This document shows positions 3,145 to 64,000 of a stretch of DNA of 64,000 nt, piece after piece. Every line of letters begins with the position of its first letter. Positions within the stretch are counted from its first letter, which is position 1. A program made the translations under genes and the position numbers. The notes under the pieces are model-generated. The model was not told the DNA's origin. It saw only the letters and a list, made by a program, of their open reading frames with translations, and did not search any database. This DNA comes from Botryllus schlosseri (Eukaryota), in assembly GCA_051294905.1 (NCBI GenBank), contig CM119375.1, positions 9,548,001 through 9,612,000 on the forward strand. Reading direction: 5' to 3'.

Positions 3145-3146
3145 AT

Positions 3147-3159: not shown

Positions 3160-3225
3160 TAAACTTGCCAAGTCAGTTGGATTACGATTTTGGCGGAAGA
3201 AGAATTGCTGAAGAACAGAGGAACA

Positions 3226-7270: not shown

Positions 7271-7399
7271 TTTTTGATCTGGACTTTTTCTTTTCGTATT
7301 AGTTTGTCACCAGTGAGCGGTTTTTTGTGCCTTGTAAATGCTTGCTTGTGTGTTTTTATTTTAATTATTCTCTCTGTTGTTGTGGGTCTCTCATCCATT

Positions 7400-7414
7400 A
7401 AGGGGAGGAGGAGT
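7400..7414 (+). promoter_or_regulatory. Polypurine tract
   Basis: AAGGGGAGGAGGAGT directly before the 3' LTR. Confidence 0.85.
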
Positions 7415-7528
7415 TGTTGTGTACCGACTATACGTTCATTGCATGACATATCTAGCTAGTGGGTCTCCTGTGGATTGCACATGTGACAGTCGGGGAGTTG
7501 AGCTGATGCGATACTGAAGTATGCACGG

Positions 7529-9247: not shown

Positions 9248-11566
9248 ATGCACGGTATTCTGTAAATAGCAATATCTTGAATGTAAAAGACGCGTGTGTT
9301 CACTTGTCTAAATCCTTAGCAAGATAGTAAGGATAGAAGAGAACACAGACATCCTACCAACCTTCACCATTCTTTAGGTTACCTACTGTGAATGTTCCAA
9401 CTTAGTTTTCATCAATTTTGATACATTGCGAGCATGCTATATTTTGCTTTGTGAACGGGTTATATTTTGTTTTAAGTTTCATATTACAACCATCCTTTCA
9501 GGCTGTAGCTGACTTGATGATCCCCCGATCCCTTCGCGACAGCCTGGTTCTGAATTGAATTATATAGACTTTGCTTTTTCATGTAGGCCTATCTATGTAT
9601 TTTCAATGTTCGCGGAACCGAATAAATTCTCTCTCTCTCCCTACCATCAACGTTGGAGAGGTTGCCAGAGATGTTCTATTTAGTCGATTTAGTCGTTTCG
9701 AAAAGTAGCTTTTTAAGCGACTTTTCTACCTATTTCTTAGGGATTTTAGAGATTTATAGCGATATTCGACATCATTTTTAAGGATTTTGGTCCATCCGGA
9801 GGTGGCAACACTGCGAACAGCGAAGGTTTTAGTACAACTATTTGATGGAATGCGCCAGATATATACTATGAAAGACGAGTTATTCTCAATTGAATATTTG
9901 TTAGTCTTAATACTAGGCCGTTTTTCGACTCTATTTTCACATTTCTTGAAAATGATAAGAAACTGCATATGATAGAGCTGAGTGGGGTAACATACTGTTT
10001 ACGACGAGTTTTTGTCTGGTACACAGTCCTATCTGAACATTATGACGCCATCTCAATTCACTACGTCACCATGGGTACGAAAAGTTGTCGGTCCACGGGA
10101 TCGGGTATGCAGGTACGGATATAACGTGAAGTATTCATAGTCTCATACTTCAGGTCATCCAAGTACGCCCCGGATTACGTTTTCTACGTGGGGTCCGGTT
10201 ATATCGGTTCTCAAAAGTACACATGGGCGCATTGGACCGGAGATCCTTCAGCTGATTGGAACAAAGCTAGCGGCTTACCTGTGCAGTTACAGGCTTCATT
10301 GAATTTAGCTAGGCCAAAACAAATGATAGTATTAGTAACCAAAGCTGGTCTGCAATGAAGTACTGGCTCATTTCCCGAGTACTTAACTAAGTACTTGTGA
10401 TGGTACTATAGGTATTCTGACTTATAATGGTATATCAACAGGCATATCCGGCATGCCGTTTTCGGGGTCGGATATCGGTGGCTTCGAATGGTTGACTGGT
10501 CCTGCTCCCAGCATGGAATTATGGGCACGGTGGACTCAATTAGGCTGCTTCAGTGGATTCATGCACGAACAAGGTCGAAAAAAGTCATGTTGAGTTTTCC
10601 TCATCTCGTCTCATACAGTTAGTCTCTAGGTGGAGGTAAAGGCATAGGAGACAAGACCCACATCTTCGACACCACCGTGGGAACGCCAATATGGGGGAAA
10701 TTTGCGAAACTACGGACCCAGCTTTCGCTGTACGCTTACAACGCGGCGCACCAAGCTAGAGATTCGGGCATACCGATCATGAGACATCACATTTTATCTT
10801 ACGAGAAAGATCGCGAAGCCGTGAAACAAGACTACCAGGTGATTAACGCCACCTGTAAACGATACAGAAGGTTCATTCAAATCCCGCCAAGTCTTATTAC
10901 CGTCATTTGTTTTCCGAAACATAGTCTTCTCTAAGTTTCGCTACAACTGATTGAGTGCTAATATATGTCATGCAATCCGACCTGTCATTAAGCAGCACAG
11001 CGCATGCATGGTTTTCATTGAATGCTGGAGACTGTATCGTCTGTACGCACAGTGTCTTGCATTCGACTACAGGCCTATAGAAACATTGATTTTTGTTCTG
11101 TGCTAAATGTTATTTCTCTTTGCATGGTTTATGTTTGGAGATTCCATCTTGGTCGCGCCTGTTGTAGCCGAGGGTGCTACTAAATGGTCGGTGTATCTGC
11201 CAAATATGCCGAATTTGTGGATTGATTTCAACGCTAATAGTAAATACATCGAGAAGGATGGAAGCTTTCGAATTGAATTCACGCGGTATTTACAGGGAGG
11301 AACGTAAGCTTTTAAAGGGCATTATGCCATCAAAGCAGTATGCGTAATTTTTTATTTCTGATTTCTGATTTCATATGCATGTACCATACGAATGGTCGCA
11401 TGTATCCTATTAAGGTGCAGTTTTGTATAATACTACTGTTCAGAAAAAGGTATTTGCTGGTGTCAAAGCCATCTTGTTCGATGTTCCGTGGTGATAATAT
11501 ATAGTATAGCCTCATCGGTAGCTAGAATTCCGACTTACATCTAACACAAAGCTATTAGCTAATAAC

Positions 11567-12435: not shown

Positions 12436-14959
12436 CTAATAACTTTGTGTTGGATTTAAGTCGGAATTCTATTACATTCTAGCACACGTAAAGTCTCGGG
12501 GTAGCGGGCCTGCAAGGCCAGTGCGTGAGTGTGATTGGAACAACATCGAAATTCCGAAACATTTCAGTACTGTAGAGACATTGATGCGCCAGTCGAGGTC
12601 GTACCGGTATTCGTGAGGGCCGGTGACATCATAGTGACGACAGATCCCAGGGTACAGACACTGAGCGCGGCCTCGAATTCTTCCGTCCGCTCTTTTCAAT
12701 CGATGGACCATATCAGATACATTTTGGTAAGATGAATGGTTGTTTTGGTTTTACCTTAATGTTCGACCATCGACCCGATGACGACCTCACATTATTCACC
12801 TGTAGTGAGACGTTGTAGTGCCGATTATTTAGGCCTGCCGCTACTCATGCTTAAAGAAAAAGCATCAATAACTTGCATCGATCATTGGTAATTTTCGCTT
12901 GCGCTTCGCCTCATACCAGAGGTGATCAGTAATGAAATATTTTTCCTTTCTACTCTTCTACTTTCCAACATATCAAGTAGGTTTTGCATACTCAAGTGCT
13001 TTCAATCTATTTCCACGTATACCTATAACTACTCACATTATGCGCATTTCAATTGTGTAAACCAGAAAATACAGTTTAGTGATATACTTGTATCACTTTT
13101 ATCAGTGAAATTGTCATGAGAATTGGGCGAAAAGCCCCTGTATCATTCATGGTAACTTAATATGTTTTTTTAAATTGAACCTATTTGTACTGTCATTGGT
13201 CATTTTAGTTTGTCGCGAGGATACATCTTTCAATTTCGAATTTGTTCATCTCCGATTGATTGGTAAATATATGCGACCCTCTGACCAAACCTACAAATTA
13301 AAACTAGTTACTTGAGTACTGTTCAAATCTTACTTTTCTAATTCTACTTGAGGTCGAGTTGATATGTCTTTGAATGGAAATTGATGGCAGTACACTTTCT
13401 GTATTATCAACGCTGACTTCCTAAAACCACGTCCGCCTAAAACCAGCGATAGCTCGCATGTAATACAAAGTGAAGATGAAATAGAGAGGATTTACATCTG
13501 TCATTGTGCATTGGAATATAGGCTTGGCCGCTGACAGGTATCGATTGCGTGGCTGACGGAAGTCTGTACGATGGATCCGAATACGTGCTCTACTTCGGGA
13601 AAATACCTGGGGTGATTTGCGAGTTCTTAGCCCGGCATACGGCGAAGAACATCACACACAACGTTCAGATTGCGGGCCCATGGCTGTGTAAGCATGACCA
13701 ATTGCCCCTTTAGAGATAAACAATTAAATAAGGAACCATAGCCGAGTCTGTGTTTGTAAGACAACGAAAGTTCACCGAATTTACTGGTATACCGGTGCGT
13801 GGTTAAACGAATCTGATTAATATACGTCAATGAGATGAAGGATGCAGGTTGTTTTAACAAATATGCGGCAAATTTGAACTTCTATTGAAAATATATGTCC
13901 CCGGAAAACTTCATTACCACTTTTAAACACACTTTTTTCTGCTAACGATGTGGTATGTCTATGATCAATGATCATACCGTCATACGCAAATTTTATATTC
14001 ATTTCGTGACAATTAAAATCCGACATTTTGGGTTATTTCCCGGGTCATTTCAAATAAATCGTAACGTTACGCAACTGCAATCTAAAATGTTTCGGTATAT
14101 CTCGAAACAATCACTGTTTGGGCCGAATAAAGATTATTTTTACAGCCCAGTCTTCATGTTGATGTTTTATTGTCATTGCGAAGTTTCCATGGCATTTCAC
14201 CAATACTGTTTATCAAGCAACGTTGCAGCGCTGCAGTTTAAATACCAATGTTCTGCCGCGTGCGGGCGCTGCAAGTAACCAACCTATATGTCATTTCACA
14301 GCTGTACCACCCGGAGTTAGTTACAACCTCACCGACAAAAAGCTTGCTAACGCTGGTAGCGTTGAGAATTTACTATCGCGCGTCGACGACCCGTCCGTAT
14401 CAGAATGGTACTTCGATTCTGACATGAAGATGCTCCGCTCAAGATGGGACCCGACGTGTTCGACGTGATGCCACTGGATTATGTTTAACAGACCGCCGAT
14501 CTACAATGGCCCGTTGACAAACTGCTTTAGTTTCGAACGGCCTAGCAGAAATAAACTTCCTTCGTGATGAGGAGAACACGATTATAAATTGGTATTTCTT
14601 TACGTGCCGCATCATTTTACCCTGCTGTTCGCATCAGTACGGTGGAGCTCAGATTACAAAGGACACTACCATATTAAGATCGAAAACTGAACTGCGCGTA
14701 GCGCTAAGAAGATTTCAAGTATAATTCAAACCTCTCATTAATTAGGGAGTCATTCGTAAATTCAATTTGCATATTGACGGAAGCCAACATATCCTAATCG
14801 AATTAAGTGTTGACGACTGCATAATTTTCCTTCTATTGCCACTGATTGGCCACCCCCGGACTAATGGATCGATATTGGGGTTTGCTAGACACAATTTACT
14901 GGACAACTGTCTCTTCGTAAAGCTTGATCTTTTGGGGAGCTCGAAGTTTGTTTGTTGTC

Positions 14960-22500: not shown

Positions 22501-25141
22501 ATAGTTTGATGTAACTTTAATGGTGATATGTGCAATTTGCATATCTCTCTATCTCGACGGTCGGCTGACTTCCCTTTGTGTATAAGTAAACAATGTTTAT
22601 GGTACGGTCACATATCGTTTATGGTCTATTCACATTGAAACCATCATACATCAGGCTTTCGGGGGTCAGATAAAATGGCCTAGCGGCTAACATTTGTCCC
22701 ACGGTGACTAGTGTCACAGCCCTGACTTCTAATACACTGGTCTACAAATTTCAATTTTTTTTCAGGTTTGGGTTTTGACAACTGATTTTGGCAAATTTTG
22801 GGGCCTTGAATCCTAAAATGGCCTCAGATTTTCTGCATCACATCACGTTTTTGAGATATGAAATATCCCTAATTTTTGAACAAAATCAATTTTTGACCCC
22901 CCCTCTACTTTCAAAACAAGGAATTCCGATGCAATAAATACTGTTTTATCTGTAATAATCCAGATTTAATTAGCAAACTAGCATTCTATATTAGATTCAC
23001 ACAAATTTGCGTTGTACGACATATTCCCTTCATAACATCAGTTGACAACTATATAAAGTTCGATCTCGGCGTGACTGCTGGACCGTGATGTTTTTGTGGA
23101 AATGTCAATACATTACAGCTCCATTACGGTGGCGTTCTGAAGAAAACGGCTGCGGCCAATTTTTTTTTCGTTTCGCCCTTCAGTTTGAGACCACATCATT
23201 TGAGTGCAGGACTCCTTTAACTGTTTCTGAACTCGCCCTGCCCAAGTCCCTGTCTTCAGAATTTCTGCACTTCATCGGAATGTGTATATGCATATTGTGT
23301 GAACTGTAAGCTATAATTCCGATAATACCTTGGTACTGTCCTATCGACATGTTCGTCAGCATATTGTAGCGTTTGATTTCATTATGGTTGCTTTTTTGCG
23401 TGACTATTTTTTATGCCAGGGCATGAAATTTTAATAAAGACAACGCTAATTTGTGTGAATCTAATATAGAATGCTTCTTTGCTAATGAAAGATAGATTAT
23501 TGCAGGTAAATCAGTATTTATTGTATCACAATTCCTTGTTTTGACAACAGTGGGGGGTAAACCATTCATATTTTTTTAAATTAGCGATATTTCATATCTC
23601 AAAAACGTGATGTGATAGAGAAAATCTGAGGTCATTTTCGGATTCAAGGCCCCAAAATTAGCCAAAACCTGTTGTCAAAAAAACCCAAACCTGAAATTTT
23701 GTGTATACCAGTGTTATCGATGAAGGGGTAGCGAGGGTAGGCTTGTGTCATCTGGATACTTACTCCCTCACATGTGGAATACGCATGCCAACACACGCGA
23801 GAGTCGCCTGGACGGCTTCGCATGCCGCCCTCGCCTGTTGATATGTCTTTGCCTCTTTGAATAACTGGTAGCCGTAAATGTTTGATCCGTAAGATATCCA
23901 TTTCCAATCTCGATGCGTCAATAAGTCGAACATCATTAACTCTGAAGAATAGTTGTGCACTATTGCAACACGAAAGAAATGTAATGAGAGCGCATGCGAA
24001 GTAGTTATTAACCGATATTCCTATTTATAAGATGAACCCTCAAAATCACCATACATTACGAAGCTTACTGCGTTGAAAACTTAATCATACATCGCTGTTC
24101 GTTGCTGATGGACAAAGATGCCTAGGTCAGAAATAACGTATTTGTACTATTTAAGGGTAACCAAGAGGGTATTATAACTCGGATTATTATTTTTAAAGAA
24201 ACCGAATAGCTTAGGTAATTGGTTTTCATACTGTTATTGTTGATGGCAGCCTGGTCAATTCTAAGTTGTACAAATTTAAAGATGTAGAATTGCATTGGTA
24301 CTACAACATCCTGATCGCATAAAATGCGCAATAGTCTACTAAAGTCAGATGATGTTAACAATACGCCGAGGAGATACTGACTTCGCACAAGCGTGACGCG
24401 GATGCTACGAACGGAACAAGAAGACCAATATTTTCACAGGTTTCAGGAAGCACTGCGCCCTAAATATCATGTGATATCAAATTAGAGAGAAAATCGGGAA
24501 ATTATATTTGACCGCAGTCAGTTTCGCCAGATAGTCGCCATAACGGAACTGAAAGTAAAAGATAATTCAAACTATCCCCACGCTAGCTGCACAAATATAT
24601 TTCAATGGTGGCAGCCTGTTTGGGATCCGTTGGCTTAGGTAGATTAACAATGTACATTGTTGTAGACATCAAAATCGTTTTAACCAATTGTAATTCGACT
24701 ATACCGTCATCTCTTACCCGCGTACATTTCAAACGCTTTGTTATGTTCAAGTCGTTCTGGACCGCATTTATTACTGCTTCCTGTATTCCTGTTTCTAAGT
24801 AGAAGGTTCACACATTTCTGATTCGAATTGACTATATAGCCTGATTGACTAGTTTGACTATTTCGGGATACATTACTTTGTGACGTCGCTAGTTCGGAGC
24901 AGTCGCACATTCCAGACTCCCCCTTTTCTCCTTTGCTCCCATTGATACCGATTCGGCCATCTCGTCCAGGTTCCCCTGCATTTCCTTGGCTTCCTTTGAT
25001 TCCGGCCTTGCCTGGTCGTCCAGGAGGCCCGATGATCTGCTCAGTATCATCCTGATCGCAGCAGCAATGTCCGTGAACGAGACGAAGGAACGATAGGTAT
25101 GTTAAAAGGACAAGGACCAGGTGACGTAGCATCTCAGACAT
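19585..25141 (-). CDS. Collectin-like lectin A (signal peptide, CCC, 13 Gly-X-Y, C-type lectin domain with QPD)
   Basis: Inferred exons 25141-24877, 24404-24378 (27-nt micro-exon, least certain), 23941-23764 and 19843-19585. GT-AG splice phases are compatible and give an open frame ending LCEKFY*. Canonical CTLD cysteines, IWIGLDD, WLPNQPD, LND. Confidence 0.88.
20994..22115. mobile_element. Buster-type hAT MITE with a nested MITE at 21626-21939
   Basis: TIRs CAGGGGTGGGCAAAC / GTTTGCCCACCCCTG, TSD ACTTATAG. The nested element CAGTGGTTCTCAAAC has TSD CCTTAGAA/CCTTAAAA. Confidence 0.9.
22735..23713. mobile_element. CACTGG-ended element with long imperfect terminal inverted repeats (mirror 46775-47753)
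   Basis: CACTGGTCTACAAATTT...AAATTTTGTGTATACCAGTG ends, with >150 bp of inverted subterminal homology. TSD unclear. Confidence 0.65.
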
Positions 25142-26183
25142 ATCTGACCTATGCAGCCTCAATGTAACGTGGCTGTGACCTGATTCAGGCTGCCCTGCTC
25201 GTTTATATGTAACTAGTGTTGCTATGCATTTTTTCAAATTACTCTCTCCCTTGAGAATTCGAGACTAACGTTTTCAAACAATTAGAGCCATTAATATAAG
25301 CTTTTTTCCTTGTTGACATGAATTATTATCCACAATTAATCTCTATTTATGTCCACATGATATGCCGGAACGTGGTATTGTCGGCACCATCCACATGAAA
25401 TAACTATTTTCTGTTAATGTTTTTAAATATCCAATTTGAATTTACATTTAAAACGAAAATATGTCCTAAACGATTTTTAAAGGATTAATTTTGAACGCGT
25501 GTGCTTTGTTGCTGCTACTACTTCAAATTGGGTCCATGTGACAGTCTCAGTTCCGGGTGCAATGATCACAGGCATAGCAAAAAGGGAGGGGTGGTAGGAA
25601 ATTATGGGAGAGTGGGCAATACCAGGGAGTCGAAATGCAATATTGGAGCCCTGGCTGCAAGATAACTTCATTTATAATTACTCCCAACGGGAGATGAGCG
25701 AAATACGTAGTTTTGCATTTAAAACAAAAATCAATTTAAAACAAACATGTTTAAAACAGGGTCATAATTTAAAACATGTTTTTTGTTGTTTTTTAGACAC
25801 GACGTCGATTATTTTCAATCGTGACGCCGCAATGGGCTGACATCGTTACATGGTTTCTTAAGAATTACAATTGAAAATATAGCTTTCAGTACAACATCCA
25901 TTGTAGTAGAAAATTTAATAAACTAGAAGACTTTTCGGGTGCCTCTTTTCAAGAGTCAACGGCAGAAAAAATTACTACAATGAGTGTTGCATTGAAAGCT
26001 ATATTCAAGTTCTGTACCACGGACCGGCTATTTAATTGAAAATATAGGGTAAATATGGATCATTTGGCGAGTTTCCGAGTCGTCTTCACCGGACCACAAA
26101 ACCTCTTTTACCAGGACTACATCGTCATGCAGCATTTTTTACGGTCAGCGGTCATCATCATCATAACATTAATTCCGACACAG

Positions 26184-42420: not shown

Positions 42421-45334
42421 TGCTAACCTCGATTCTTTGGAGATTATTGCTCGCAAACGAACCTTAAAAGGTTCTTCACGTATGTACATTTTTTGAATTT
42501 CGATATTAACGTGGATTATCGAGCTACATACCTGTTATAGGCACTGTATTAGTATCGATGACAGTGAAGTCGATTCCAGCATATCAATCATTCTCCCATC
42601 TCGCGCCCGTGTTGGTAATGGCTATCAATAAATCATTATTACGCTTAAGGTTAGCAAACAACATGCCTCCGATCGACGAAGAATTAGTAGTAGCAATGAA
42701 AGTGCTAGCCGATCGCCATATATCTATAATTATCTCATCTATCGCTCGCGTTGGCATTGACTATCAACAAATTATCGTTACGTGAGCAGACATACTGTCA
42801 AACTTCGGTATCTTACAAAAACCCAAAACGAAAGTGGGTCATGCTAAAAGTCGACTGATAAGGAATCAAATACCAAAGATCTGTCTATAATGGCTATGAA
42901 TACCAAAACTACAACAGAAACTGCAGACGATAAGCGAGCTGGGACGAATCGAGGAAATAGTTGCGAGGAGCTGGTCAGAAGAGAGGCTGGGGGCAGTCGT
43001 ATATATCTACGGCTGCATTTGAAACAAGAGGTGTTTCAAAACACATGTCATTAAAAATAATTATATTTTTAAAAAGTTGTATAATATTGTATGCAAAAAG
43101 ATGTAGTATAAGCATTCGAACCACATACAATAGATCAGCGGTTCTCAACTTGAATTTTTTTTAAATTAGAGAAATCGCGAGGCAGTTTCGCTACATAACT
43201 GCTTAATCTTCGGGATCCACATAAACAGAATGGCCATCTAGTGTGAAATATTATTCTGTGCAAACTCCTTTTAATTGCCAATAGCCTAAACATAATGTTT
43301 AGAGATGTTTTGTTTGGGTTTTGGAAAGATTTGTTTGTAAAAACCGTATTCTTCTTTGATATACATAACCGCTACTCCAGAATAACTTCATTTTTCATCA
43401 TCACCGTGCTATTGAAATTATTATCAAATCAATACATCACAAGATTGCGATATAATGAAAAGAACTGATGGGTTGATAGATAGAAACGACTAGGCTGGAC
43501 GTTATATGTTCATTAACAATATGTTTCTCAATTATGGTACAAAATATGTTGCAACTTGCGATCAAATACCCGAAGTTGTCGTCGGATGCGTTACGCATTA
43601 TTATCATATTCGCCAACATCTTTGTAGAGATGGATTTCGGCACTCGTTCATATCAAATCGTTCATTCATCACTCAGCCGCGTATTTCAAGAAACGCGCGC
43701 AGCTACAGAATTCGCTTAGAAACAATAAAAGTTTTCCCACTTTCTATATAAATATTATGATGTTATTTTCAAGAAAAATCATTTTATTGCTGTTTATTGC
43801 TACCATGCAGTTAGTATTTACATAAGACAAATGACGCTTATATCTACTAAAACTTGGGGGGTTAAGGTGCAAAAGGGGTCCGCGAAGACAAAAAGGCTGA
43901 GAACCACTGCACTAGATATAGTCGACTTATACGACATGGAATGGTTGGAGCCCGCGAAATCATCGTCGGTTTGACAATTATAACATGTAGTTATATATCA
44001 CAGCATCGCAGTGGTTCCCAACCTTTTTTCCTTCGTTCCCCACTTCTGATTTTTTCAGTTACTTTTATTCCCTACAAACTAAAATCTCTCTATTGAAAAC
44101 TTGAAATCCTCCATCCAATAAAATTCGGTTAGACTTTGTTTCGCTGAGTCTTGCCGTTGGCGAGAACAATCGCCTTTTGTTGCAACATAAAACTTCCTGT
44201 GTATCTACTAAATGTGTTTGTGAGCCCAATATTGGTTTTCCAGAGTTCGAAATGAGTTTTTGTGGACAACACGCGTTAAAATTACCTACGCATATTCCAG
44301 AGCAGTGAACTAGTAACCGTCATCGTGGTGTTATGTCTCCGCACATATATGTATTTGTATATATTGCATGTAGTTATTTTGCATTTGCGTCTATTCCCCA
44401 GCAGATATCTCTGAATTCCCCACTAGTGGGTAATTCCTCGCCGGTTGGGAACCACTGCTGTATCGGAATTGATGTCTGATGAGTATGATGACCGCTGACC
44501 GTACAAATGCTGCATGACGAGGTATTCCTGGTAAAAGAGATGTTGATAGTTCGGTGAAGACGGCTCGGAAACCTCTTTCACCAAAAGAGCCATATTGACC
44601 CTATATTCGCAAATGCAATTCTTAAGAAACCGTATAATAATATCAATCCATTGTGGCGTCAAAATTGAAAATTCCCGACGTCTTGGCTAAAAAAACAATA
44701 AAAAAACATGTTTTAAATAAGGACCTTGTTTTAAACATATTTGTTTTAAATTGATTTTTGTTTTAAATACAAAACAACGTAGTTCGCTCATCTCCGGTTG
44801 GGAGTAACTCTAAATGAACTTATCTTGCAGTCAGGGCTCCAATATTTCATTTCGACTCCCTGGTATTGCCCACTCGCCCATAATTTCCTACCACCCCTCC
44901 CTTTTTGCTATGCCTGTGATCATTGCAGCCGGAACTGAGACTGTCACATGGACTCAATTTGAGGTAGCAGCAGCAACAAAGCACACGCTTTCAAAATTAA
45001 TCCTTTAAAAATCGTTTAGGACATATTTTCGTTTTAAATATAAATTCAAATTGGATATTTAAAAACATTAACAGAAAATAGTCATTTCATGTGACTGCTG
45101 CCGACAATACCACGTTCCGGCATATCATGTGAACATAAATAGGGATTAATTGTGGATAATAATTCATGTCAACAAGGAAAGAAGCTTATATTAATTGTTT
45201 CAAAACGTTAGTCTCGAATTCCCAAGGGAGAGAGTAATTTGAAAAAATGCATAGCAACACTAGTTACATATAAACGGGCAGGGCAGTCTGAATTCGGTCA
45301 CTGCCACGTTACATTGAGGGTGCATAGGTCAGAT

Positions 45335-48300
45335 ATGTCTGAGATGCTACGTTACCTGGTCATTGTCCTTTTGACATACGAATCGTTCCTTCATCTCGTT
45401 CACGGACATTGCTGCTGCGATCAGGAGGATAGTGAGCAGATCATCGGACCTCCTGGACGACCAGGTAAGGCCGGAATCAAAGGAAGCCAAGGAAATGCCG
45501 GGAAACCAGGAAGAGATGGCCGAATCGGTATCAATGGGAGCAAAGGAGAAAAGGGGGAGTCTGGAATGTGCGACTGCTCCGAACTAGCGACGTCACAAAG
45601 TAATGTATCCCGAAATAGTCAAACTAGTCAATCAGGCTATATAGTCAATTCGAATCAGAAATGTGTGAACCTTCTACTTAGAAACAGGAATACAGGAAGC
45701 AGTATTAAATGCGGTCCAGAACGACTTGAGCATAACAAAGCGTTTGAAATGTACGCGGGTAAGAGATGATGGTATAGTCGAATTACAATTGGTTAAAACG
45801 ATTTTGATGTCTACAACAATGTACATTGTTAATCTACCTAAGCCAACGGATGCCAAACAGGCTGCCACCATTGAAATATATTTGTGCAGCTAGCGTGGGG
45901 ATAGTTTGAATTATCTTTTACCTCCAGTTCCGTTATGGCGACTATCTGGCGAAACTGACTGCGGTCAAATATAATTTCCCGATTTTCTCTCTAATTTGAT
46001 ATCACATGATATTTAGGGCGCAGTGCTTCCTGAAACCTGTAAAAATATTGATCTTCTTGTTCCGTTCGTAGCATCCGCGTCACGCTTGTGCGAAGTCAGT
46101 ATCTCCTCGGCGTATTGTTAACATCATCTGACTTTAGTAGACTATTGCGCATTTTATGCGATCAGGATGTTGTAGTACCAATGCAATTCTACATCTTTAA
46201 ATTTGTACAACTTAGAATTGACCAGGGCTGTTCAAGGGGCGCCATCAACAATAATAGTATGAAAACCACTTACCTAAGCTATTCGGTTTCTTTAAAAATA
46301 ATAATCCGAGTTATAATACCCTCTTGGTTACCCTTAAATAGTACAAATACGTTATTTCTGACCTAGGCATCTTTGTCCATCAGCAACGAACAGCGATGTA
46401 TAATTAAGTTTTCAACGCAGTAAGCTTCGTAATGTATGGTGATTTCGAGGGTTCATCTTATAAATAGGAATATCGGTTAAAAACTACTTCGCATGCGCTC
46501 TCATTACATTTCTTTCGTGTTGCAATAGTGCACAACTATTCTTCAGAGTTAATGATGTTCGACTTATTGACGCATCGAGATTGGAAATGGATATCTTACG
46601 GATCAAACATTTACGGCTACCAGTTATTCAAAGAGGCAAAGACATATCAACAGGCGAGGGCGGCATGCGAAGCCGTCCAGGCGACTCTCGCGTGTGTTGG
46701 CATGCGTATTCCACATGTGAGGGAGTAAGTATCCAGATGACACAAGCCTACCCTCGCTACCCCTTTATCGATAACACTGGTATACACAAAATTTCAGGTT
46801 TGGGTTTTTTTGACAACAGGTTGTGGCTAATTTTGGGGCCTTGAATCCGAAAATGACCTCAGATTTTCTCCATCATATCACGTTTTTGAGATATGAAATA
46901 TCGCTAATTATAAAAAAAATATGAATTGTTTACCCCCCTCTGTTGTCAAAACAAGGAATTCTGATACAATAAATACTGATTTACCTGCAATAATCTAGCT
47001 TTAATTACCAAAGAAGCATTCTATATTAGATTCACACAAATTAGCGTTGTCTTTATTAAAATTTCATGCCCTGGCATAAAAAATAGTCACGCAAAAGATC
47101 AACCATAATGAAATCAAACGCTACAATATGATGACGAACATGTCGATAGGACAGTACCAAGGTATTATCGGAATTATAGCTTACAGTTCACACAATATGC
47201 ATATACACATTCCAATGAAGTGCAGAAATTCTGAAGACAGGGACTTGGGCAGGGCGAGTTCAGAAACAGTTAAAGGAGCCCTGCACTCAAATGATGTGGT
47301 CTCAAACTGAAGGGCGAAACGAAAAAAAAATTGGCCGCAGCCGTTTTCTTCAGAACGCCACCGTAATGGAGCTGTAATGTATTGAAATTTCCACAAAAAC
47401 ATCACGGTCGAGCAGTTAAGCCGAGATCGAACTTTATATAGTTGTCAACAGATGTTATGAAGTGAATATGTCGTACAACGCAAATTTGTGTGAATCTAAT
47501 ATAGAATGCTTGTTTGCTAATTAAATCTGGATTATTACAGATAAAACAGTATTTATTGCATCGGAATTGCTTGTTTTGAAAGTAGAGGGGGTTCAAAAAT
47601 TGATTTTTTTCAAAAATTAGGGATATTTCATATCTCAAAAACGTGATGTGATGCAGAAAATCTGAGGCCATTTTAGGATTCAAGGCCCCAAAATTAGCCA
47701 AAATCAGTTGTCAAAACCCAAACCTGAAAAAAATTGAAATTTGTAGACCAGTGTATTAGAAGTCAGGGCTGTGACACTAGTCACCGTGGGACAAATGTTA
47801 GCCACTAGGCCATTTTATCTGACCCCAGAAAGTCTGGTGTATGATGGTTTCAATGTGAATAGACCATAAACGATATGTGACCGTACCATAAACATTGTTT
47901 ACTTAAACACAAAGGGAAGTCAGCCGACCGTCGAGATAGAGAGATATGCAAATTGCACATATCACCATTAAAGTTACATCAAACTATCTTATCATGGAAT
48001 CGAACGTCTCGACTCCACACTGGAAAGCGACAAACACTGAACAATCCTGAGATCTAACCGTTTGGCGAAGACACCGGTTTTGTGACTTTCTCCGCAACGC
48101 ATATCACGATGCTGCAACATATTGTTTCGGACTGACTCAAATTCGTATCGTTGTCCATAGTTTAAACTGGTACGGATGTTGGTTATTGCGCTACCTGCGT
48201 CGCCAATAACTTTTATACAGGGTATATCGCATGAGGTGAGCCTGTCGTTAGGAATTCACGGCGGTATAGGCTACGATGGCATTGCTGACATGAGATCGTA

Positions 48301-53620: not shown

Positions 53621-55516
53621 AAGGCATAAATTACAATTTGGATGTGGCGGTGAAACATTTTGGGTTGGATGGCGAGTCTATATTAACAATGGGATGACGT
53701 AGTGTGACAATTCCCTTCGAAATACTTGGGATGACTTGACTCAAGTCTAAATACACAGCGACTCGAAATTAATTTAGACTTGTTGATCCCCACAATGCCT
53801 TCAATTTGAAACAATTTAAAACGTGAAAAGAATGTGTATAGTTAGTCTTCTAAAACTATGGAAGTATATGTGAAAGTAGCCTACAAAGTTATCAATGAGT
53901 CAGTCGTAGACGTAGACAAATATCCCTCTGGAGCACGTGAATATAAGTGGAAGTAGGCTACTTCGTTACTGATCCCCGTTGTTGCACTAGTACTTCAACA
54001 AGCCAGTTTCAATCTTGTGCGGCCGCAATGATAACTTGAAACGATAAATTTTCCGATTCCAATCACATTCAGAATTCAGATTTGTGACTTATGCAGAAAA
54101 TCTTTTAGATCACGTTACCTGGGATAGTTGATATAGTTGTTGATTCCAGCACCTCCAAATGAAGCGAAAGTTCAACCGTGTGGCAATAACAAGACACATG
54201 TCGATGTAATCACTATTGCTTTACATATACGCCTTCGAAGCCTGCCCAATCGACGAAGAGTAGGCTATGCTGTGATGTCGTCATATCAACATGTTTACAT
54301 CGGCGTGCAACTACACTATATGTCAAGACTTTACCGTGTAAGCGCTGCAGACTCTACGTTCAGTTATTCCGCAATTAGATAATAATAACCTCCGTGTATA
54401 TACATATAGCTTAAACATATATCCAATGCTTCAGTATATTCATATTCAGGCATATATAAATGCATTGATTACTTTTACAGTGGCACAAATGTGCGATAAC
54501 TGCCATAACTCTTCATTTCTGGTTGGAACTGTCTGTCCTTACGAAGTAGTTTGGCCTGAAAAAGCTTATTTGACTTGAAAACTGACAAACTTTTACATGA
54601 AAAAAACTTCATTTTAACGAAATCTGGTCATGTGAAGAATTCCACGCATTATGGCAGAAATAATTAAAATTTGCTGTAGTACAATGCAAGATATTTTCCT
54701 ACATTCTCGGGTAGAAAGTGTCAGTCCTTACTAAGTAGCTTGCCAAGAATGGAGAAGGAACGTTCAACAGCAGCAGTTATTGGCTGAGAACACTGAAGTT
54801 GTGCGTATATACACCGCTGGTGGCACACAGTGTTGCTTCATTCTGACAATGGTGTCTATGTCACAATTTTTCATTATGCGCTTCTTGATGTAAGAACCAT
54901 GCAAGGCCCACGCAGTCTTGCTTCAGTTAGGATATTGCGGTACGTTGAGCATAACACTATGACCACCTATTTGTTTCATTTGAATGTTTATGCTTCACAA
55001 TGAGCAGACAATGGGCCGTCTACAACGGTAGGTCTCTACAGCGGTAGGTTTATAAAGCAAGCTACAAGCTGTAAAATGTCAAACGATAAGTTCACCGACA
55101 GTGTAAAATCTACAATACAAACGAAATGCAGGTTGCAAAAAAATTTCTACTTTGTAAAAACTTTTGACATTTTTTGACCTAACGTTACAATTTTGACATA
55201 ATTTTGACTTTTTTTGACATGTCAAAAAAATCGCCATAGGTATATCCATTATCCATCCCTATCACGCCCACCGAATGGAAATGTTCATTGTTCACCACCC
55301 TTGTACGGAAGTTCAGAACACTGGTTTCGCGCAAAATAAGGAACATCGACGGAATCTTGGTACCACTCTCGTGACATCTATACGATGTACTAATCGGATG
55401 AGGAACACTGTTTTGCCAATACGACATGTATGTGTATTCCCGGCCAAAATTATACCAACGCGTCCAACGGATTCCGATTCAATACAATTTCAATTGTAAC
55501 ATTACAAAAATGCTAT

Positions 55517-55866: not shown

Positions 55867-56098
55867 TAACTAGTATGGTATAACCGTGTCTAAGCATGAG
55901 TTTCTCTCAGCCCACTTCTTGTTCATGTCCACTGTGCAGTCATCATTGTGCATTGTGTTCCGAGTCATAGTAAATATAAATTGCTCGATACGGGCGGCGT
56001 CATGCAATACAAATATTTGACACCTGCACAAGAGTCACAAGCATTATTATGAACATTGCATTGCGGTTGAGCATACTGTAATGTAATTGCATTCGAGG

Positions 56099-59000
56099 AT
56101 GGTTAGACCGATTACGTTTTTAGAGGTCGTTGTACTTCTTTCTGTAATGATATGCGCAACATGGGCAGCACAGACACCACCTCAGCACGACATTATCCAT
56201 TACATTGAAGCAAGACAGGTGAGTACATTACGGTCTCCTAATTGCTAAATGGTAATAATTACTTTGGTCGACGGCTTATAGAAATGTTGAATGAAATGAA
56301 GTCAAATCATTTATTGGGTATTTCATGACCACCCACTACATGCTACTTCGAGGCATCATCAAGTGTCGATCAAAGCATTCAAGTTGAAATAATATGTAAA
56401 CCATATATCGTCAACTACACGTTGGCATGTCACAACTCACTCACATAGATGCGGTTTTACGTTTCCACTTTGCTAATCATCGTAAGGAAACAATAATCCT
56501 GTTCAGTCGACCACCACACTTTCCATTTTGTTCATCGTTTGAAGCACAAAACATGTCGCGTTTCATGTAAAAAAGATAGCACTTCAAAATGTCCCTGATG
56601 CTGATTTAGCACTATCTATTATGTGCTTTATGATCTACTTCCTATATTATGTGCTCTATGATCTATGTGCTGCAGCGGCTACGTGCTTCGGTATGATATG
56701 GATTACTAAAAAATCTGGCGTATGTCAGCCGCCTGCTGTCCTCGAAATTATAATAAAATCGCCTGCGACGACACTTACCCCGTTAATTCGAAACCATCAC
56801 AATATAAAATTGTATTACAAACGAAACAATTGACGTGCATACTTTTAGGTAGGTTATTAAGGTTATCAACAAAATACGCTTGAAGACATGAAATTTAAAA
56901 AAAACAATGACTTCTAGATAGACGCCGAGTAGTCGCCAGGATAAAAACAATTACCGAATTGTAAAACAAAAGGGCTCAACAACACTGGTTTGATACGAGA
57001 AATTGCACAATATATATATATACCACGCCAGAATTATAACTCCAATACGCAAAAGGCGGCACGGAGTCCAGATATAAGGAACAGATAAGCGAAACTATAT
57101 CGGAAAACATTGTGGGAAGACTTACAATACCAGATTACTTACACGATAGTGGCAAATGCATTGTGTAGTGAAAAAATGTCTATAGTATAATCAAATCTAT
57201 TGTTCAGGTGACCCCATTTGCGCTGCCCATGACTACGACGACGTAAAAATTATGCTATATACCTAATGTACACACTGAAAAGATTTTTCAATGTACAATA
57301 CAGGATGCGAACCACGTTTACATATACGGAGGAAACCTGACAATAATCGTCGACAGACATCCGTGGAGACTCGCCATATACGACAACACAACCCGAAAGT
57401 TATACGTACAAGAGGCTGAAGAATCTTCCAAACGATTGGTTGGTGTATAATATATCGTTTATTTGGATTCTAGCGTGTGCTGGAAAATAATACAATAGGT
57501 CAGCGAATCCAGTTTCGAATTTTCTGGATATATATTTCCTTACAGCAAGTTTGACAATTAGATTTCGCCCAGTATTTCGTCTAGTATCGTCTCGACTCCA
57601 TCCAATATTTTTATGCTGGATTGAATTGAATAAAGGTATATAGTTTCTCATTTATCACCGTCCAAACCGTAACCATAAATGAGAATATGTAAATACTTGG
57701 TAAATCTATTTGCTACGAGCATTCGTTTGAAAGGGATACGGGCGATGGGACGGAAAATACTTGGACATATATCAAGGATACCTGCTGCGTTTGGGTGGCA
57801 TAGTCGAATGGCACCATGCTACAGACGCCTCCTTAAAAAGCACAATGCCTGGACCGAAAGGTAATGTTTTTTGTAGGCTTTACTGAACATTTGCACATAG
57901 ACGAATTGCACATCTGGTTTGAGATCAAAATTCTTTCTTCTGTTTCGATGTTACTTATAGGCCATAAGGCAATTCAAATATCATGAATCATAATTGCAAT
58001 ATCAAGCAGACTGATACGGTGCCCAAACAATCAGATGTATACTGGAAGTATAGAAAACTAGTCAATTATAGTAAGAATATAATTGATTTCAGTCCATACA
58101 AAATTATAATTTGCGAACAAACAGAAGCATATTGGGATGGTGAGGTTCACGTTCGCGTTCTGTGTGTGAACTTCGGAAATTGAGAGGTTCACGTTCACAA
58201 ACGAACCTGGGTAGGTTCTGCACTGTGAACCTTTTCATATATTACAATTTTCTCTTCATTATAATATCTTTGGTTGAAATGTCTTGCATGTCAACTGCGG
58301 GATACTCTACGCCTGGCGCTGGCAGCATATCAAAATCAACGCTATAAACGAGCATGCACATTGACAATCACAAAAATCTTTCCTGCTTCGTTAAAACAGT
58401 TTGCTCGAAATATACAGCTTTCCGTTTGTGAAGTTTTAATGGCTCTCTGCTGTGAGTTTGACCCGCAATCACACAACATTAAGATTGGAATACACTACGT
58501 GTAGGTAGTCAGCGAATGATTCTTATTCAATCAATCAATAAAATTGATATCATTGTCTGATGTAAAAAATCTAACAGGCGTGCGGAGTCGATCTTGATTT
58601 CGTATGTCTATTGTGTAATAAAAACCAAATCTGTGCGATTGGGGTGTTGGCTACTGCTGTAGTGTACAACTTTTTAAAGTAATATCGGTAGCAAGTACAG
58701 AAACCCGTTTTACACTCTGCTCGATATCAACGTAGCAATATTCACACGCCGAATACATTGTTCAGTCTGGCCTAGACCGTTAAGGCTTAACCTTATATTC
58801 GCTTGCAAGTATCCTCGGCGAAATTGTCGGCAAAGCGACGGAAGATATTTGTTTTATGGGATTATGATATCATTTGATTTCCCCAGTTGATACATTTGGC
58901 GACGTTTAAAATGTCAATATGTACTTCAGCATTGTGGAATTATGTGGCCCGAGTCGTCGCTAGGTATCGTGTACAACTGTAAATCGATATTGGCTATAAC

Positions 59001-62000
59001 TTCACTGAAATGTAGGGTTGAAATTAGTAATATAACGTCACGTGACATCATGAGGTTTCGTTATTTGCGTTCTCACAGAACCTTTCAAAAAGGTTCGCGT
59101 TCACACGAACCTGAACCTTGCAGAGGTTCATCATCATCATTGGTTTATTAGCAATTTTATCAGTTCAATACACCACAAAAATGCGATACAATGAAAAGAA
59201 AGGAAGATGTCGAAGCGACTAGGAGTTGTCTATGGAATCGGACACCCACCTTGGCCCTAATGAGCTACAAGTATTTTTAATATAGGAATAGTTTGAAAAG
59301 TAATCAAGTTTGTTTAGACTTAAGGCTGTAGTGCACAACGTACGTACAATGTACTCGTTATTTATTGTGCAGTGTATACATGTACCGTGTCTGTAGCCAA
59401 CATCTGGAGTATATATCTCTACAGGAGCCCCAGTATCTGCAACCATCGAAGTCGAGACATCGTCCAATGGAAAGCTACTCGTGACATTCGAGAACTTTGA
59501 TGAGAGACAGGTTTCGATCCGCACTGAATTACAAAATCCCGGAGAGAAGTACACGCGCCAAAATCAAAATCAGGATAATTCTGCCAATGACAAACCACCT
59601 TGACGTTTCAGCAATCGCATAGGTTGGGGTTATCTAACGCCAGACGCCGACGAAGCGTTTTACGGATTTGGAGAGCGGTTCACGGGAGCGAACCAGCGGG
59701 GTCACAAAGTCGGTTCCTGGCTCGAGGATGGGGGATGGGGGCTCGGAAAATTCGACCCTACCGGTAAAATACGCGTGAGTATCGTTGAAGTACTTACTGT
59801 TGTGTTAACAAAGCTGAGCTAGAACTCCGCCAAATGTACAGGTGCCAAAAGGGGAGCGTTCTACGTACGTTCCCATGCCTCTTTTTATATCATCCAAAGG
59901 TTACGGAATGCAGCTCGATATGTTTCACAGGTGAACTCTGAACAGATATTCAATTCGGCCTACTCAAAATTAACGGGGACAAAGCCTAAATTTTCGAAAT
60001 TTACAATTCGCATATTATTATTTATCCTTCTTGGTTGCTCATGCTAAGCCTTTCGACATAGGTTGGCGAAAATGTAAGTATTTAGTAATAGCAGGCAACT
60101 TCAGGAAAGTAGAACTAGATAAGGCATAGACTACATATGTGCATGAGCAATTGCTCAAAGGCTGACCGTATACCTCATAATATTCTGACGATTAAGTACT
60201 GAAAGCAGAGTGTAATAGTTTTCAGGACATGTAACAATTGACTTTGACCTTATTGGATTTCCTTATTGAAGTGTACAAAGATATCATCCCTTTGTTATGT
60301 AGAGATTCGGGTATTGGTGTCTCGTTGGTTGGTCATTTTCTCTCTTTATCGCAGGAGCGTGTTCGATTCAAAAACGTCCAACAAGCACATGCACATCATG
60401 GCGGAAACGCATTATATGAACCTTACGATCTTCTGCAAAAATTCTATTAAGGTATTGGAAATGTGGTACCAATAACGAATACACTGATATAGGTATAGGT
60501 AGATGTGCTGACCCTCATCGATACATTGGACCATTAGGTTATCAGTCGCTGTATCATAAGCGTAAATATATACTGACAAGTATTTCAGGATACCTTTACG
60601 GCCATGTCACGAAAGAATGGCAAATCCTTGATCCCTCCGCTATGGGCATTCGGACCGTGGAATCAACTTGCCGATGAGGAGTCAGGAGTATCGACTCTGG
60701 ACCGGGCCAAGTAAGACGTCCTTTGCACGCAGTATGCGCCTGCAAATTGTTCAAATATATTTACCACTCGAATCAAAGAATTCCTTATGAATTTTGCGTT
60801 TTACAGACAGATGCTTTTTGACCAAGATATTCCGTTTTCCCATTGCGTAAACACTGTTCACTACTTTCCTAACGGAGATGGCACTAAAGCAGAAGACGCA
60901 GCCAGAATAACAGTAAGTATCAAGCCATGCAGAGCAAATCGAATTTAACAATTTACCAACCATACACAAAACATCCACAAATTACATACGTAATGAATGT
61001 TTTATCTTCTACAGGAGCTGAATAAAGATCTGTTAAACCTCGGTATCAAGGTATATAGAGTTCTCACATTGGTGCAATGACACGAAGAATAAAATACGAA
61101 AATTTCATAGTCGACGGCATATTTCAACGCGATGCTTTCACAAGAATGGAACGAGACCTACGAATACGCCGCTCGACAGGGTTACTTTTACAAAACCAAG
61201 GACGGAAAGCCATACAATTATTCCTATGAAGGCGCGCGGTAATTCAAAAGTATAGCTAACTTGCATTTCATAAATCGTTATCAATATGAACTATTTCTTT
61301 TAATGGTAGGAGAGCTTCCTCTGTGAAACTCATCATGAAACTGATCAATCATATAAGTATTTTATCAGGAGCCAAGGGACCCCAGGGGTTTCCCGGAGTT
61401 TAATACACACACTCAACTCATAAATATGCTTTTTGATGACACGCCCTGTTTGGTCATCATCGGCTACAGGGAATGAAAAATTATTTCCGTGATTTCGTTC
61501 TTTTAGCACCGGGTTGATTCCAAGTTCATTTTGTAAGCCAGTTTAATTGTGTATTGTGGTCAGTTTTTGTTTTGATGACACATTTGGCCTACCGACGAAT
61601 CGCAGATTAGCGTAAGTGTTACTAAGGTCAGTAAAAGTTAAGAAATAAGTATTATGTGATAGTTGGAAGCACTGGTGATGACAATTTAACGGATACCATT
61701 TACTGAGCTTATTCGTTTACCATTTCACGTAAAAAGTTGTTTGTCAAATCGGTGAACGCACTTCCGGTGACTCGTGGGTTGTCTGGTGTGCGTTGGGAGA
61801 AAGTAAATTTTACAACACAATGCGAATTCGTCAGAGAACCTTAAAACTTTTGTTACAGTGCATTTAAAGTGTCTCAAGTAGATTACTCGAATCCTGCGGC
61901 CGCCAAGTGGTACACGACGCAGTTGGATCGTGCAATTAAAGCCGGGTTCCGAGGTTTGGAAATTTTAAATACTGTTTACGCTCGAGTTCAAATTATTAAT

Positions 62001-62477
62001 TAGAAATGGAGTAGTTAGAGACAGTTGGTTTCCGTATTTCCGTATTGCGTTCTAGTGCATGTTGAAATCCTGCCTTCGCAACATGACCATTTTAGAATAC
62101 TTGGGCGATTTTGACATATTTATACTGGCTCTGAAAAATGAAGGATTTGCGTATTTTTAAAAGGCTTCTTTTAAAACATTTCCTTAAACATATTTTTAAA
62201 AAGTATGGTTTGAACAACGCTTCGTTTTAACTGCAAGCCTACAAACATGTCCACGGCGTCTTTAGTGTTTGGGTCGTCAAAATCGCAACTTTTCATCCCC
62301 TGTATCATACCGAAACGTCTGCTTTGCCTGTTCAGGCTGGATGTACGACTATGGAGAATACACACCGCCTGATTCCGTGTCATACGAAGGTCACAATGGG
62401 CTTTACATGCACAATTTATTTCCTCTGCAGTATCAGAAAACATGTCACGACTATTTGGTGAGCAGATTCGGAAACTG
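56099..62477 (+). CDS. Secreted GH31 glycosidase (YihQ-like group), copy 2; continues beyond the window
   Basis: Inferred exons: 56099-56218 (MVRPITFLEVVVLLSVMICATWAAQ, signal peptide), 57734-57860 (tentative), 59425-59548, 59612-59774 (EAFYGFGERF..NQRG..W.EDGG), 59842-59930 (TYVPMPLFISSKGYG), 60355-60451, 60589-60710 (PPLWAFGPW), 60807-60912, 61015-61050, 61111-61238, 61859-61953 (VDYSNPAAAKWY), 62336-62477 (GWMYDYGEY). Phases are compatible with one open frame. Confidence 0.88.
58135..59135. mobile_element. Probable non-autonomous DNA transposon with GGTTCAC/GAACC subterminal repeats
   Basis: Clusters of GGTTC/GAACC motifs at both ends. TIR and TSD not cleanly identified. Confidence 0.45.
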
Positions 62478-62926
62478 GTGAGTATTATGTTGGTAGGTAG
62501 ATCGTAGATGTCAATTCAGCGATCAATACGATGCAAATATGTGGCACAGGAACTACACTACCCTCTAGCGGATTGCTCATTGTCGAATCACAGTAGGCGT
62601 TGCATTTATCAGACGCTATTGTGAACGTGGTGTTGAGAGTGAGACTCGAATAAACTTGGCTTCACCATTTTACCGCTAGTCTGAAGACAAGAAAGATAAT
62701 AGTTCGCTATGATATCGAGAAACTTTCATATAGTTTTGTGATCAAAAACGTTATGACTGTGATCCGAAACATTCTTTTGCAAAAGCCAATCCAGAAATCA
62801 AAAGTTGCTTGGAAAAAAGATCTTCAATTTGTATAATGTCATGAAACAAGTGTTAAAATACTGCATTCAGCCCAATATCAACGTTGGATGGGGTTGTCAG
62901 GGGTGTTATATTTCTTCTCTATTTAG

Positions 62927-63330
62927 TCCACTGGTTCCCAGCGTATGCGCTATCGCCCCCCAGTGGGCGATTTTTAGAAACAGTGGTGGCGGGCGAAAAT
63001 AACGAACGGGGCAAATGGGAGGCGAAAGCGTACGTAGGGGGCTGTATTTACCTAATCGGCACGAAATGCACAAGAAAAACGGGTTATTCTGGATCTGCAT
63101 AGAAAGTTAACTAAAAAAAGGCACTCACACCAATTATACGTGCAGATTATGTCTTTCGGGATTAATGTCAGAAAATGACCTTTTTTTATGGTCAATTCAC
63201 CAGCGATCAGAGTATAGTTGTGTGAAATTTCCCGTTTATATGTCTTCTTTTTCGGTTCCGAAAATATGGAGCTAAAATTTGCGTCGAACTTGATAAGGGG
63301 GCGACGAGCCGAAAAAGGTTAAGAACCATA
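62927..63330. mobile_element. Buster-type hAT MITE, GH31 copy 2 only
   Basis: CACTGGTTCCCA...GGTTAAGAACCA. The empty site ATTTAGTCGATTTAGTC is in copy 1 at ~9678-9700. Confidence 0.7.
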
Positions 63331-63635
63331 GTCGATTTAGTCGATTCGAAAAACAGCTTTTCAGCGATTTTTATAACTATTTTCCGGGATATAGAGATAT
63401 AGCTGGCGATTTCCAGCACCATGCAGTTTTAAGGATTTTGGTCCATCCGGAGTTGGCAACACTGCTAAAGTATTTATTAGAATGCGTCAGGTATGTACTT
63501 TGAAAGACGAATTATTTTCAAATGAATACTTGTTAATCTTGACACCAGGCCAGTTTTTCGACTCAGTTTCTATTTTCACGCCATCTCTTGAAAATATCGA
63601 GGAACGGAATATTATAGAGCAGGGTCTGGTAACAT

Positions 63636-64000
63636 TAGGGTAACCATATTTTGAGGTCCGGAAAAGAGGACACTTGTTACAAATCACAAAACTGATGATA
63701 TCGGATGAGAAAACTGGCAATTTAAAAACTTCACGGTAAATACTTTTGTATTGACTAAAAAAATGGCATTTTTACAACTCATATCTCTAAAAACCCGCTC
63801 GAACGTAAATTAGGTCTTTATTACCGATTATTTCTTTAGTCAACCTTGCTGTTACTGCCGGCGAAATTCAGATTTCGCGTCATTTATGTCGTTTTTTAAC
63901 TGTGCCTGTAATATTACGTGGCTGTCGGAGCTATAAATAAGGATGAATTGCCTAAAAGGAGGGCATTTGGGCGAACTTGCAGGACATTTTCGATTTCCTG
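63636..64000. mobile_element. TAGGGTAACCATA-family hAT MITE, truncated by the window end
   Basis: TAGGGTAACCATATTTTGAGGTCCGGAAAAGAGGACAC start. Body similar to 50987-51652. Confidence 0.75.

Follow-up and report, generated by a model that had tools for sequence, protein, structure and literature searches.

We analysed a 64,000-nucleotide stretch of the genome of the tunicate Botryllus schlosseri (contig CM119375.1, positions 9,548,001 to 9,612,000; hereafter the window) and found that it carries two copies of a gene for a glycoside hydrolase of family GH31, arranged in tandem on the same strand. The window gene was inherited vertically, is an ordinary member of an uncharacterised subfamily of GH31 and stands beside its own recently dead duplicate. 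Copy 1 (forward strand, 1 to about 14488) is a recently decayed pseudogene. Copy 2 (forward strand, 13 exons at 56099–62477, all introns GT-AG) is intact as far as the window shows, is transcribed and spliced, and leaves the window at its 3' end. We put the probability of the explanation as a whole, namely a tandem pair belonging to an old, vertically inherited GH31 subfamily of animals and other eukaryotes that are not sulfoquinovosidases (SQases), at roughly 80%. The DNA of the window is animal, has a GC content of about 40% and is free of assembly gaps.

Neither copy is contained in the window as a whole, intact gene, and a composite protein was assembled from exons 1–13 of copy 2 and the C-terminal 384 residues of copy 1, the source of its C-terminal motifs. 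This protein of 878 residues, encoded like that of the tunicate Styela clava by 20 exons, joins a live gene to a dead one; it can still represent the family because both halves are 64–66% identical to the 'sulfoquinovosidase-like' protein of Styela (P0208; 67% for the composite). Its identity to E. coli YihQ is 26%. The composite was analysed in scripts; for searches of hidden Markov model (HMM) libraries, structures and databases the Styela orthologue was used in its place. Exons in the window match Pfam families PF13802, PF01055 and PF21365 (the GH31 N-terminal, TIM-barrel and C-terminal domains) with E-values down to 1e-12, the Styela orthologue exceeds the gathering scores of all three, and single exons match YihQ structures at E-values of 1e-5 to 1e-6, far better than chance would yield. 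The aspartates that serve in catalysis as nucleophile and as acid/base (D405 and D472 in YihQ) are kept in the composite and in every aligned member of the clade. With this domain set and both catalytic residues, the product is assigned by sequence to GH31. The N-terminus of copy 2 has a hydropathy above 2 over residues 4–24 and no other transmembrane-like hydrophobic segment follows it. The N-termini of orthologues resemble this signal-peptide-like segment, and the composite contains nine N-x-S/T sequons.

An initial annotation of this region had described an intron-rich animal GH31 enzyme with a signal peptide and about 20 exons, and that description holds for the composite. The motifs that it quoted are all present and are drawn from the two gene copies: GWMYDYGEY (62335–62361) and HYFP (60859–60870) in copy 2, and a second GWMYDYGEY (2628–2654), GSQKY (10206–10220), WTGDPSADW (10233–10259), SDIGGF (10468–10485) and FMFGDSILVAPV (11128–11163) in copy 1. 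The exons of the gene it quoted are real. However, the C-terminal half of that gene comes from the copy 1 pseudogene, which had gone unrecognised.

Relatives were collected with phmmer, using the nucleophile exon against 1.84 billion representatives, with cluster look-ups and with two homologue searches. The named sequences come from Styela clava, three Branchiostoma species, four species of Haliotis, Lottia, two species of Patella, Ostrea, the sponges Amphimedon and Ephydatia, the holozoan Pigoraptor and the heterolobosean Pharyngomonas, and are accompanied by many metagenome sequences. The second homologue search, seeded with the Styela protein, added no further animal phyla; in the homologue searches vertebrates lacked the clade and no arthropod member came up. 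In a maximum likelihood tree of 47 rows (LG+C20; support given as ultrafast bootstrap/SH-aLRT; rooted arbitrarily on alpha-xylosidases) the window protein groups with Styela (100/100), tunicates group with amphioxus (98/94), and sponges, molluscs and chordates form one animal clade (100/100). This animal clade lies within a 22-row clade (99/97), whose other members are Pigoraptor, Pharyngomonas, a transcript of a third protist and metagenome rows. The three metagenome rows of the larger clade that were checked lie on eukaryote-like contigs, carrying DOT1 and GOST genes, a MULE transposase, and dynein-like AAA genes, and the metagenome sequences nearest the animals are those on eukaryote-like contigs. 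Sequences on compact bacterial contigs (P0018, P0091 and P0107) branch outside the 22-row clade, next outward. By these placements the subfamily appears to span sponges, molluscs, cephalochordates, tunicates and several protists, and to have bacterial relatives.

Intron positions in the genes of Styela, Branchiostoma and Amphimedon were mapped from the genomic loci. Each of the 19 introns of the window model has its match in Styela (one is displaced by three alignment columns), and 12 intron positions, including those bounding a 36-nucleotide micro-exon, are common to the window gene, Styela, Branchiostoma and Amphimedon. The gene already bore introns in the last common ancestor of sponges and chordates. 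With 12 positions in common with the sponge, it could have come from bacteria only before animals arose. These comparisons show that the gene descended vertically within animals and that the GH31 subfamily is old.

According to the initial annotation, this animal lineage may have taken up a YihQ-type gene from bacteria by lateral transfer and domesticated it, adding a signal peptide and introns. Among solved structures and named HMMs, the nearest are indeed bacterial, proteins from bacterial metagenome-assembled genomes (P0018 and P0091) are 40–42% identical, which is about the identity between amphioxus and abalone, and the family is missing from vertebrates and from arthropods in the searches made. 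However, the animal sequences are monophyletic with full support and roughly follow the species tree, protist homologues stand between animals and bacteria, and the window gene, Styela, amphioxus and the sponge share their 12 intron positions, micro-exon included. Recent horizontal transfer was rejected on the animal clade and the shared introns, the former being the result that the initial annotation had itself specified as refuting its proposal, and we give an acquisition specific to this lineage hardly any chance. An ancient exchange in which bacteria gave the gene to an early eukaryote or received it from one, with vertical descent and many losses thereafter, is compatible with vertical inheritance in animals rather than opposed to it, and we rate it at a little below even odds; the bacterial-type character would then be real, and very old. 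The 22-row clade sits inside a wider set of sequences that lie on bacterial contigs (the P0018 group, P0107 and the Myxococcota P0114 group), and its distribution among eukaryotes is patchy (Holozoa, one heterolobosean and unnamed protists). However, with the tree rooted arbitrarily on alpha-xylosidases the direction cannot be oriented, many metagenome rows are of no known origin, and the eukaryote relationships do not match the species tree, which makes transfer between eukaryotes or hidden paralogy equally possible.

In a sequence search of the PDB, FjDex31A, the SQases and YicI score about equally (E-values of 1e-45 to 1e-37), whereas GAA, GANAB, MGAM and SI give 1e-20 to 1e-11 (about 1e-18 for GANAB and GAA) and MYORG about 1e-13. 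The proposal that the protein lies nearer to enzymes of the YihQ/YicI type than to GAA, GANAB or MYORG (1e-45 to 1e-37 against 1e-18 to 1e-13) is thus supported. An AlphaFold2 model of the Styela orthologue (predicted local distance difference test score, pLDDT, of 89.8) matches more than 500 GH31 structures and fits SQases best, with TM-scores of 0.84–0.87, root-mean-square deviations (rmsd) of 3.3–4.8 Å and 21–23% identity to the enzymes of E. coli, A. tumefaciens and E. rectale and to BmSQase. In this model the core fold is closest to that of the YihQ sulfoquinovosidases. By sequence, however, YihQ is not the sole nearest relative, FjDex31A and YicI scoring about the same.

Several animal proteins of the clade, including the Styela, Haliotis and Branchiostoma orthologues, bear the NCBI name 'sulfoquinovosidase-like'. 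SQases require Q288 (or a K/E pair), R301, W304, Y508, H537 and the catalytic D405 and D472 (bioRxiv 10.64898/2026.02.11.705467). In the alignment with E. coli K-12 YihQ, the clade as a whole has threonine for Q288, a gap at R301, phenylalanine for W304 and for Y508, and glutamine for H537; Q262 is replaced by serine. The loop bearing R301 is absent and its place is taken by H-[YF]-[FL]-P, in which the histidine and proline of HFFP are invariant across the clade. None of the sulfonate-binding triad R301/W304/Y508 is kept, and no basic residue was found at the equivalent aligned position in the clade. The absence of the sulfonate-binding residues had been asserted in the initial annotation and is borne out by this alignment; the YihQ motifs that it gave (GWMADFGEYLP, GSQKY..WAGDQNVDW, YLLGRDILVAPV, AQDW, RVMW and DIGGY) are correct in alignments with PDB 5aed and E. 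coli K-12 yihQ. Against the cut-off of 553 bits of the NCBIfam YihQ equivalog NF007746, the Styela (271), Haliotis (265) and bacterial P0018 (330) proteins all fall short, and YihQ itself scores 1247 bits.

The name given by NCBI implies a divergent SQase that binds the sulfonate through different residues. The resemblance of the core fold to SQases and the diet of the host animals, which feed on algae rich in sulfoquinovosyl diacylglycerol, speak for such an enzyme. However, five of the seven required residues are replaced or deleted, the R301–W304 loop is missing entirely with no basic residue in its aligned place, the NF007746 score is below the cut-off, and a separate clade of animal SQases exists that has all seven residues. 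We regard a divergent SQase as very improbable, and SQase function of the window protein was rejected on its residues, on the NF007746 cut-off and on the placement of its clade.

The separate clade is represented by a protein of the sea urchin Diadema antillarum (XP_071501018.1, P0188), a YihQ-type SQase that has all seven key residues and scores 897 bits against NF007746. This observation agrees independently with the claim of animal SQases in a 2026 preprint, in which true SQases are argued to let aquatic invertebrates digest algal sulfolipid, and in which only sequences that group with YihQ and keep the key residues were retained, with no sponge or tunicate named among them (bioRxiv 10.64898/2026.02.11.705467). 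In our tree YihQ and the Diadema protein form a distant clade (100/100), apart from that of the window protein. Judged by residues and tree, animals have two YihQ-like GH31 clades, one of true SQases and the present one, which lacks the sulfonate pocket.

The window protein would act as a retaining alpha-glycosidase of the secretory pathway, using the standard GH31 double-displacement mechanism, as we infer from the presence of both catalytic aspartates and the GH31 barrel. Its substrate may be an alpha-linked neutral glycoside of the glucoside or xyloside type; a neutral glycone seems more likely because the phenylalanine and the HFFP loop would fill the sulfonate site. It is probably a secreted or lysosomal digestive enzyme, a role that would fit the hosts, which are filter feeders, grazers and phagotrophs. 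The change of H537 to glutamine, together with the invariant histidine and proline of HFFP, appears to mark a pocket unlike that of any characterised GH31 enzyme. More tentatively, and with the odds in our view well against it, the clade (HFFP / GWMYDYGEY / DIGGF-x-W / [RH]-[DE]-Q) may be a GH31 subfamily with an undescribed glycone or linkage specificity, which marine filter feeders, grazers and phagotrophic protists would retain and secrete in order to digest an alpha-glycoside of algae or bacteria. In that event the 'sulfoquinovosidase-like' annotation of the clade would be wrong. Literature searches on this clade found nothing.

On two unrelated eukaryote-like contigs, a gene for aldose 1-epimerase (mutarotase) lies within a few kb of a GH31 homologue (L008, 77–949, and L006, 6292–6759). 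A functional link to the release of an alpha-anomeric sugar is possible.

For the exon model of copy 2, all GT/GC-AG combinations were scored with an HMM built from homologues, and public RNA data (contigs from runs X1 and X5, raw reads from X15) were placed on 56090–62089. The RNA confirms 11 of the 12 exon joints as GT..AG (56218/57304, 57438/57734, 57860/59425, 59548/59612, 59774/59842, 59930/60355, 60451/60589, 60710/60807, 60912/61015, 61050/61111 and 61238/61859). At the twelfth joint, an RNA contig ending exon 12 (61954) reads on into the first letters of exon 13. Because the RNA joints match the exon model, copy 2 is transcribed and correctly spliced. The span 56099–62477 starts exactly at the ATG of exon 1 and stops exactly where exon 13 ends.

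Exon 1 of copy 2 (56099–56218; all exons are on the forward strand) holds the ATG and the signal-peptide-like hydrophobic N-terminus (MVRPITFLEVVVLLSVMICATWA/AQ), and an RNA joint at 56214>57300 (cut +4) is seen in run X1. The N-terminal beta-sandwich domain is encoded in exon 2 (57304–57438), which has an HMM match and RNA joints on both sides, and exon 3 (57734–57860) is flanked by joints 57437>57733 and 57858>59423, both GT..AG. The acceptor of exon 4 (59425–59548) lies at 59425 by its RNA joint, and the acceptor at 59434 in the HMM-based model was dropped for this reason. Exon 5 (59612–59774), with FYGFGERF and a match to Pfam Gal_mutarotas_2, exon 6 (59842–59930) and exon 7 (60355–60451) are each supported by HMM and RNA, as is exon 8 (60589–60710), where the TIM barrel starts with GRSLIPPxWxFGPWNQ. 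Exon 9 (60807–60912; RNA) carries HYFP in place of the YihQ R301/W304 sulfonate loop. Exon 10 (61015–61050) is the 36-nucleotide micro-exon, also found in the Styela, amphioxus and sponge genes, with RNA joints 60912>61015 and 61048>61109. Exon 11 (61111–61238; HMM and RNA) is followed by exon 12 (61859–61953), which has a joint at 61237>61858 and a loose end after 61954 that runs into exon 13. The last exon in the window, exon 13 (62336–62477; HMM and homology), contains the nucleophile aspartate in GWMYDYGEY, and the gene goes on past the window. No counterpart of exon 14 was found in 62478–64000, and exon 14 onwards of copy 2 was not found elsewhere in the window on either strand.

Within intron 3 of copy 2, at 58090–59290, RNA depth is in the thousands, with a word depth of up to about 14,000 at 59090–59289, compared with about 30–75 on exons. 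Loose ends and variant letters are also frequent here, and the stretch resembles a dispersed repeat, of the short interspersed element (SINE) or miniature inverted-repeat transposable element (MITE) kind, that is transcribed from many loci, rather than a part of the gene. Upstream of copy 2, a repeat about 730 bp long (54510–55243) has inverted counterparts inside or after copy 1, at 12275–11562 and 15775–15626, with 78–85% identity; it is likely to be a transposable element.

Copy 1 is a pseudogene because it has two frameshifts, has lost exons 2–11, has a dead donor and a dead acceptor, and contains a retrotransposon insert. In DNA alignment with copy 2, its exon 1 relic (389–507, forward strand, like all features of this copy) shows a 1-nucleotide deletion that causes a frameshift in the signal-peptide region. 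A blastn comparison of the two copies places a deletion at 921–1252, where about 4.4 kb with exons 2–11 (56806–61226 in copy 2) is missing; these exons were sought elsewhere in the window on both strands and no further GH31 pieces were found. Exon 12 (2166–2260) has six synonymous differences from copy 2, and exon 13 (2629–2770) retains GWMYDYGEY. In the alignment of the copies, about 6.8 kb of intron 13 (2915–9681) has no counterpart in copy 2, and this stretch contains the open reading frames (ORFs) of a long terminal repeat (LTR) retrotransposon (3309–7086), with Pfam matches to gag, reverse transcriptase-RNaseH and integrase. Exon 14 (10154–10308) carries GSQKY and the acid/base aspartate in WTGDPSADW, but the donor after 10308 is CT, not GT (G/CT in copy 1 against G/GTgagg in Styela at the same position and phase). 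Exon 15 (10442–10573) encodes SDIGGF, with phenylalanine at the position of YihQ Y508, and is followed by exon 16 (10630–10838), recognised by HMM. Exon 17 (11128–11303), with FMFGDSILVAPV, has no AG acceptor before it (ttgcatgg/TTTATG), whereas AG is present in Styela (ttttag/TACATG). Downstream lie exon 18 (12576–12726; HMM), exon 19 (13522–13687), which belongs to the distal C-terminal domain, and the last exon (14302–14488). By comparison with the C-terminus of Styela, the last exon has a frameshift near 14433–14437; the conserved C-terminal strand (LKMGPDVFDVMPLDYV) goes on in another frame at 14438–14488, with its stop at 14488.

The decay looks recent: exons 12–13 of the two copies are 95.8% identical, most of the changes being synonymous (8 of 10 exon differences), and the flanking introns are 82% identical. 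These same figures, together with copy 1 exons that are still open, could also be taken to mean that the lesions are assembly or haplotype artefacts and that the window holds two working genes. However, there are five independent lesions of differing kinds, namely two 1-nucleotide frameshifts, a 4.4-kb deletion of ten exons, a G-to-C change at donor position +1 and the loss of an acceptor AG, and splice-site substitutions are atypical of assembly errors. Copy 1 also holds the stretch of about 6.8 kb with retrotransposon ORFs that is absent from copy 2. We consider artefacts an unlikely explanation and retain the decay of copy 1.

Between the GH31 copies are two ORFs of 176 amino acids with collagen triple-helix repeats, at 24707–25237 on the reverse strand and 45239–45769 on the forward strand. 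Their opposite orientation would fit a collectin-like gene that was duplicated in inverted fashion. In Styela, GET4 and RAD51 lie upstream at the GH31 locus; the window was searched for such synteny and shows none.

Several points weigh against a live secreted glycosidase of old animal descent beside a dead copy. Since the 3' half of copy 2 lies beyond position 64000, this copy can be called intact for its first 13 exons, and copy 1 either still worked until a short time ago or may owe some of its lesions to errors of assembly. Secretion is predicted from hydropathy and from similar N-termini in orthologues. The deep branching of the eukaryotes is poorly resolved, and Pharyngomonas, not the holozoan Pigoraptor, is nearest to the animals (91/87). 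The clade has no characterised member, so the substrate and the digestive role are both inferences. Moreover, H537, a substrate-binding residue in YihQ, is glutamine throughout the clade, which could mean an unusual glycone.

On the reading we favour, the present clade should not be counted as sulfolipid-degrading capacity, despite its 'sulfoquinovosidase-like' annotation. A tempting case of gene transfer from bacterium to animal is removed, and an old animal glycosidase family, lost in vertebrates, is marked out for biochemical testing.

The orthologue group of the window gene comprises Styela XP_039260778.2 and proteins of Branchiostoma, Haliotis, Lottia, Patella, Ostrea, Amphimedon and Ephydatia, all of them predicted. 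The window protein is 64–67% identical to the Styela protein over its whole length and 46–50% identical to the others. The group shares the domain order of signal peptide, N-terminal beta-sandwich, TIM barrel, and proximal and distal C-terminal domains, and an active-site signature of HFFP, GWMYDYGEY, WTGDPSxDW, DIGGF and MHEQG. The Haliotis orthologue differs from the window gene in being intronless: in Haliotis rubra (QXJH01000269.1, 1001–3583) it is one uninterrupted ORF of 860 codons, whereas the genes of the sponge, amphioxus and tunicates have 19–24 introns. A retrocopy may have taken the place of the original gene in the abalone lineage, or all introns may have been lost there.

Among enzymes of known function, the GH31 sulfoquinovosidases (E. 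coli YihQ, PDB 5aed/5oht; A. tumefaciens SmoI, 5ohs; BmSQase, 8r56) share with the window clade the nucleophile motif GWMxDxGEY, the acid/base motif WxGDxxxDW and the best-scoring NCBIfam model. However, the window clade has an extra distal C-terminal domain of about 150 residues and is separate in the tree. The F. johnsoniae dextranase FjDex31A (6jr6), the C. japonicus transglucosylase Agd31B (4b9y) and the E. coli alpha-xylosidase YicI (1we5) have E-values near that of YihQ and the same four-domain GH31 architecture, including the distal C-terminal domain. In structural alignments, by contrast, they are 17–18% identical, with a global rmsd of about 9 Å, and the nucleophile-strand motif of the xylosidases, KTDFGE, differs from that of the window clade. 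GAA, GANAB, GANC, MGAM and SI, which are of the subfamily-1 type, and MYORG belong to the same family and use the same catalytic mechanism but are far more distant, and the match of MYORG to the window protein covers the C-terminal half only.

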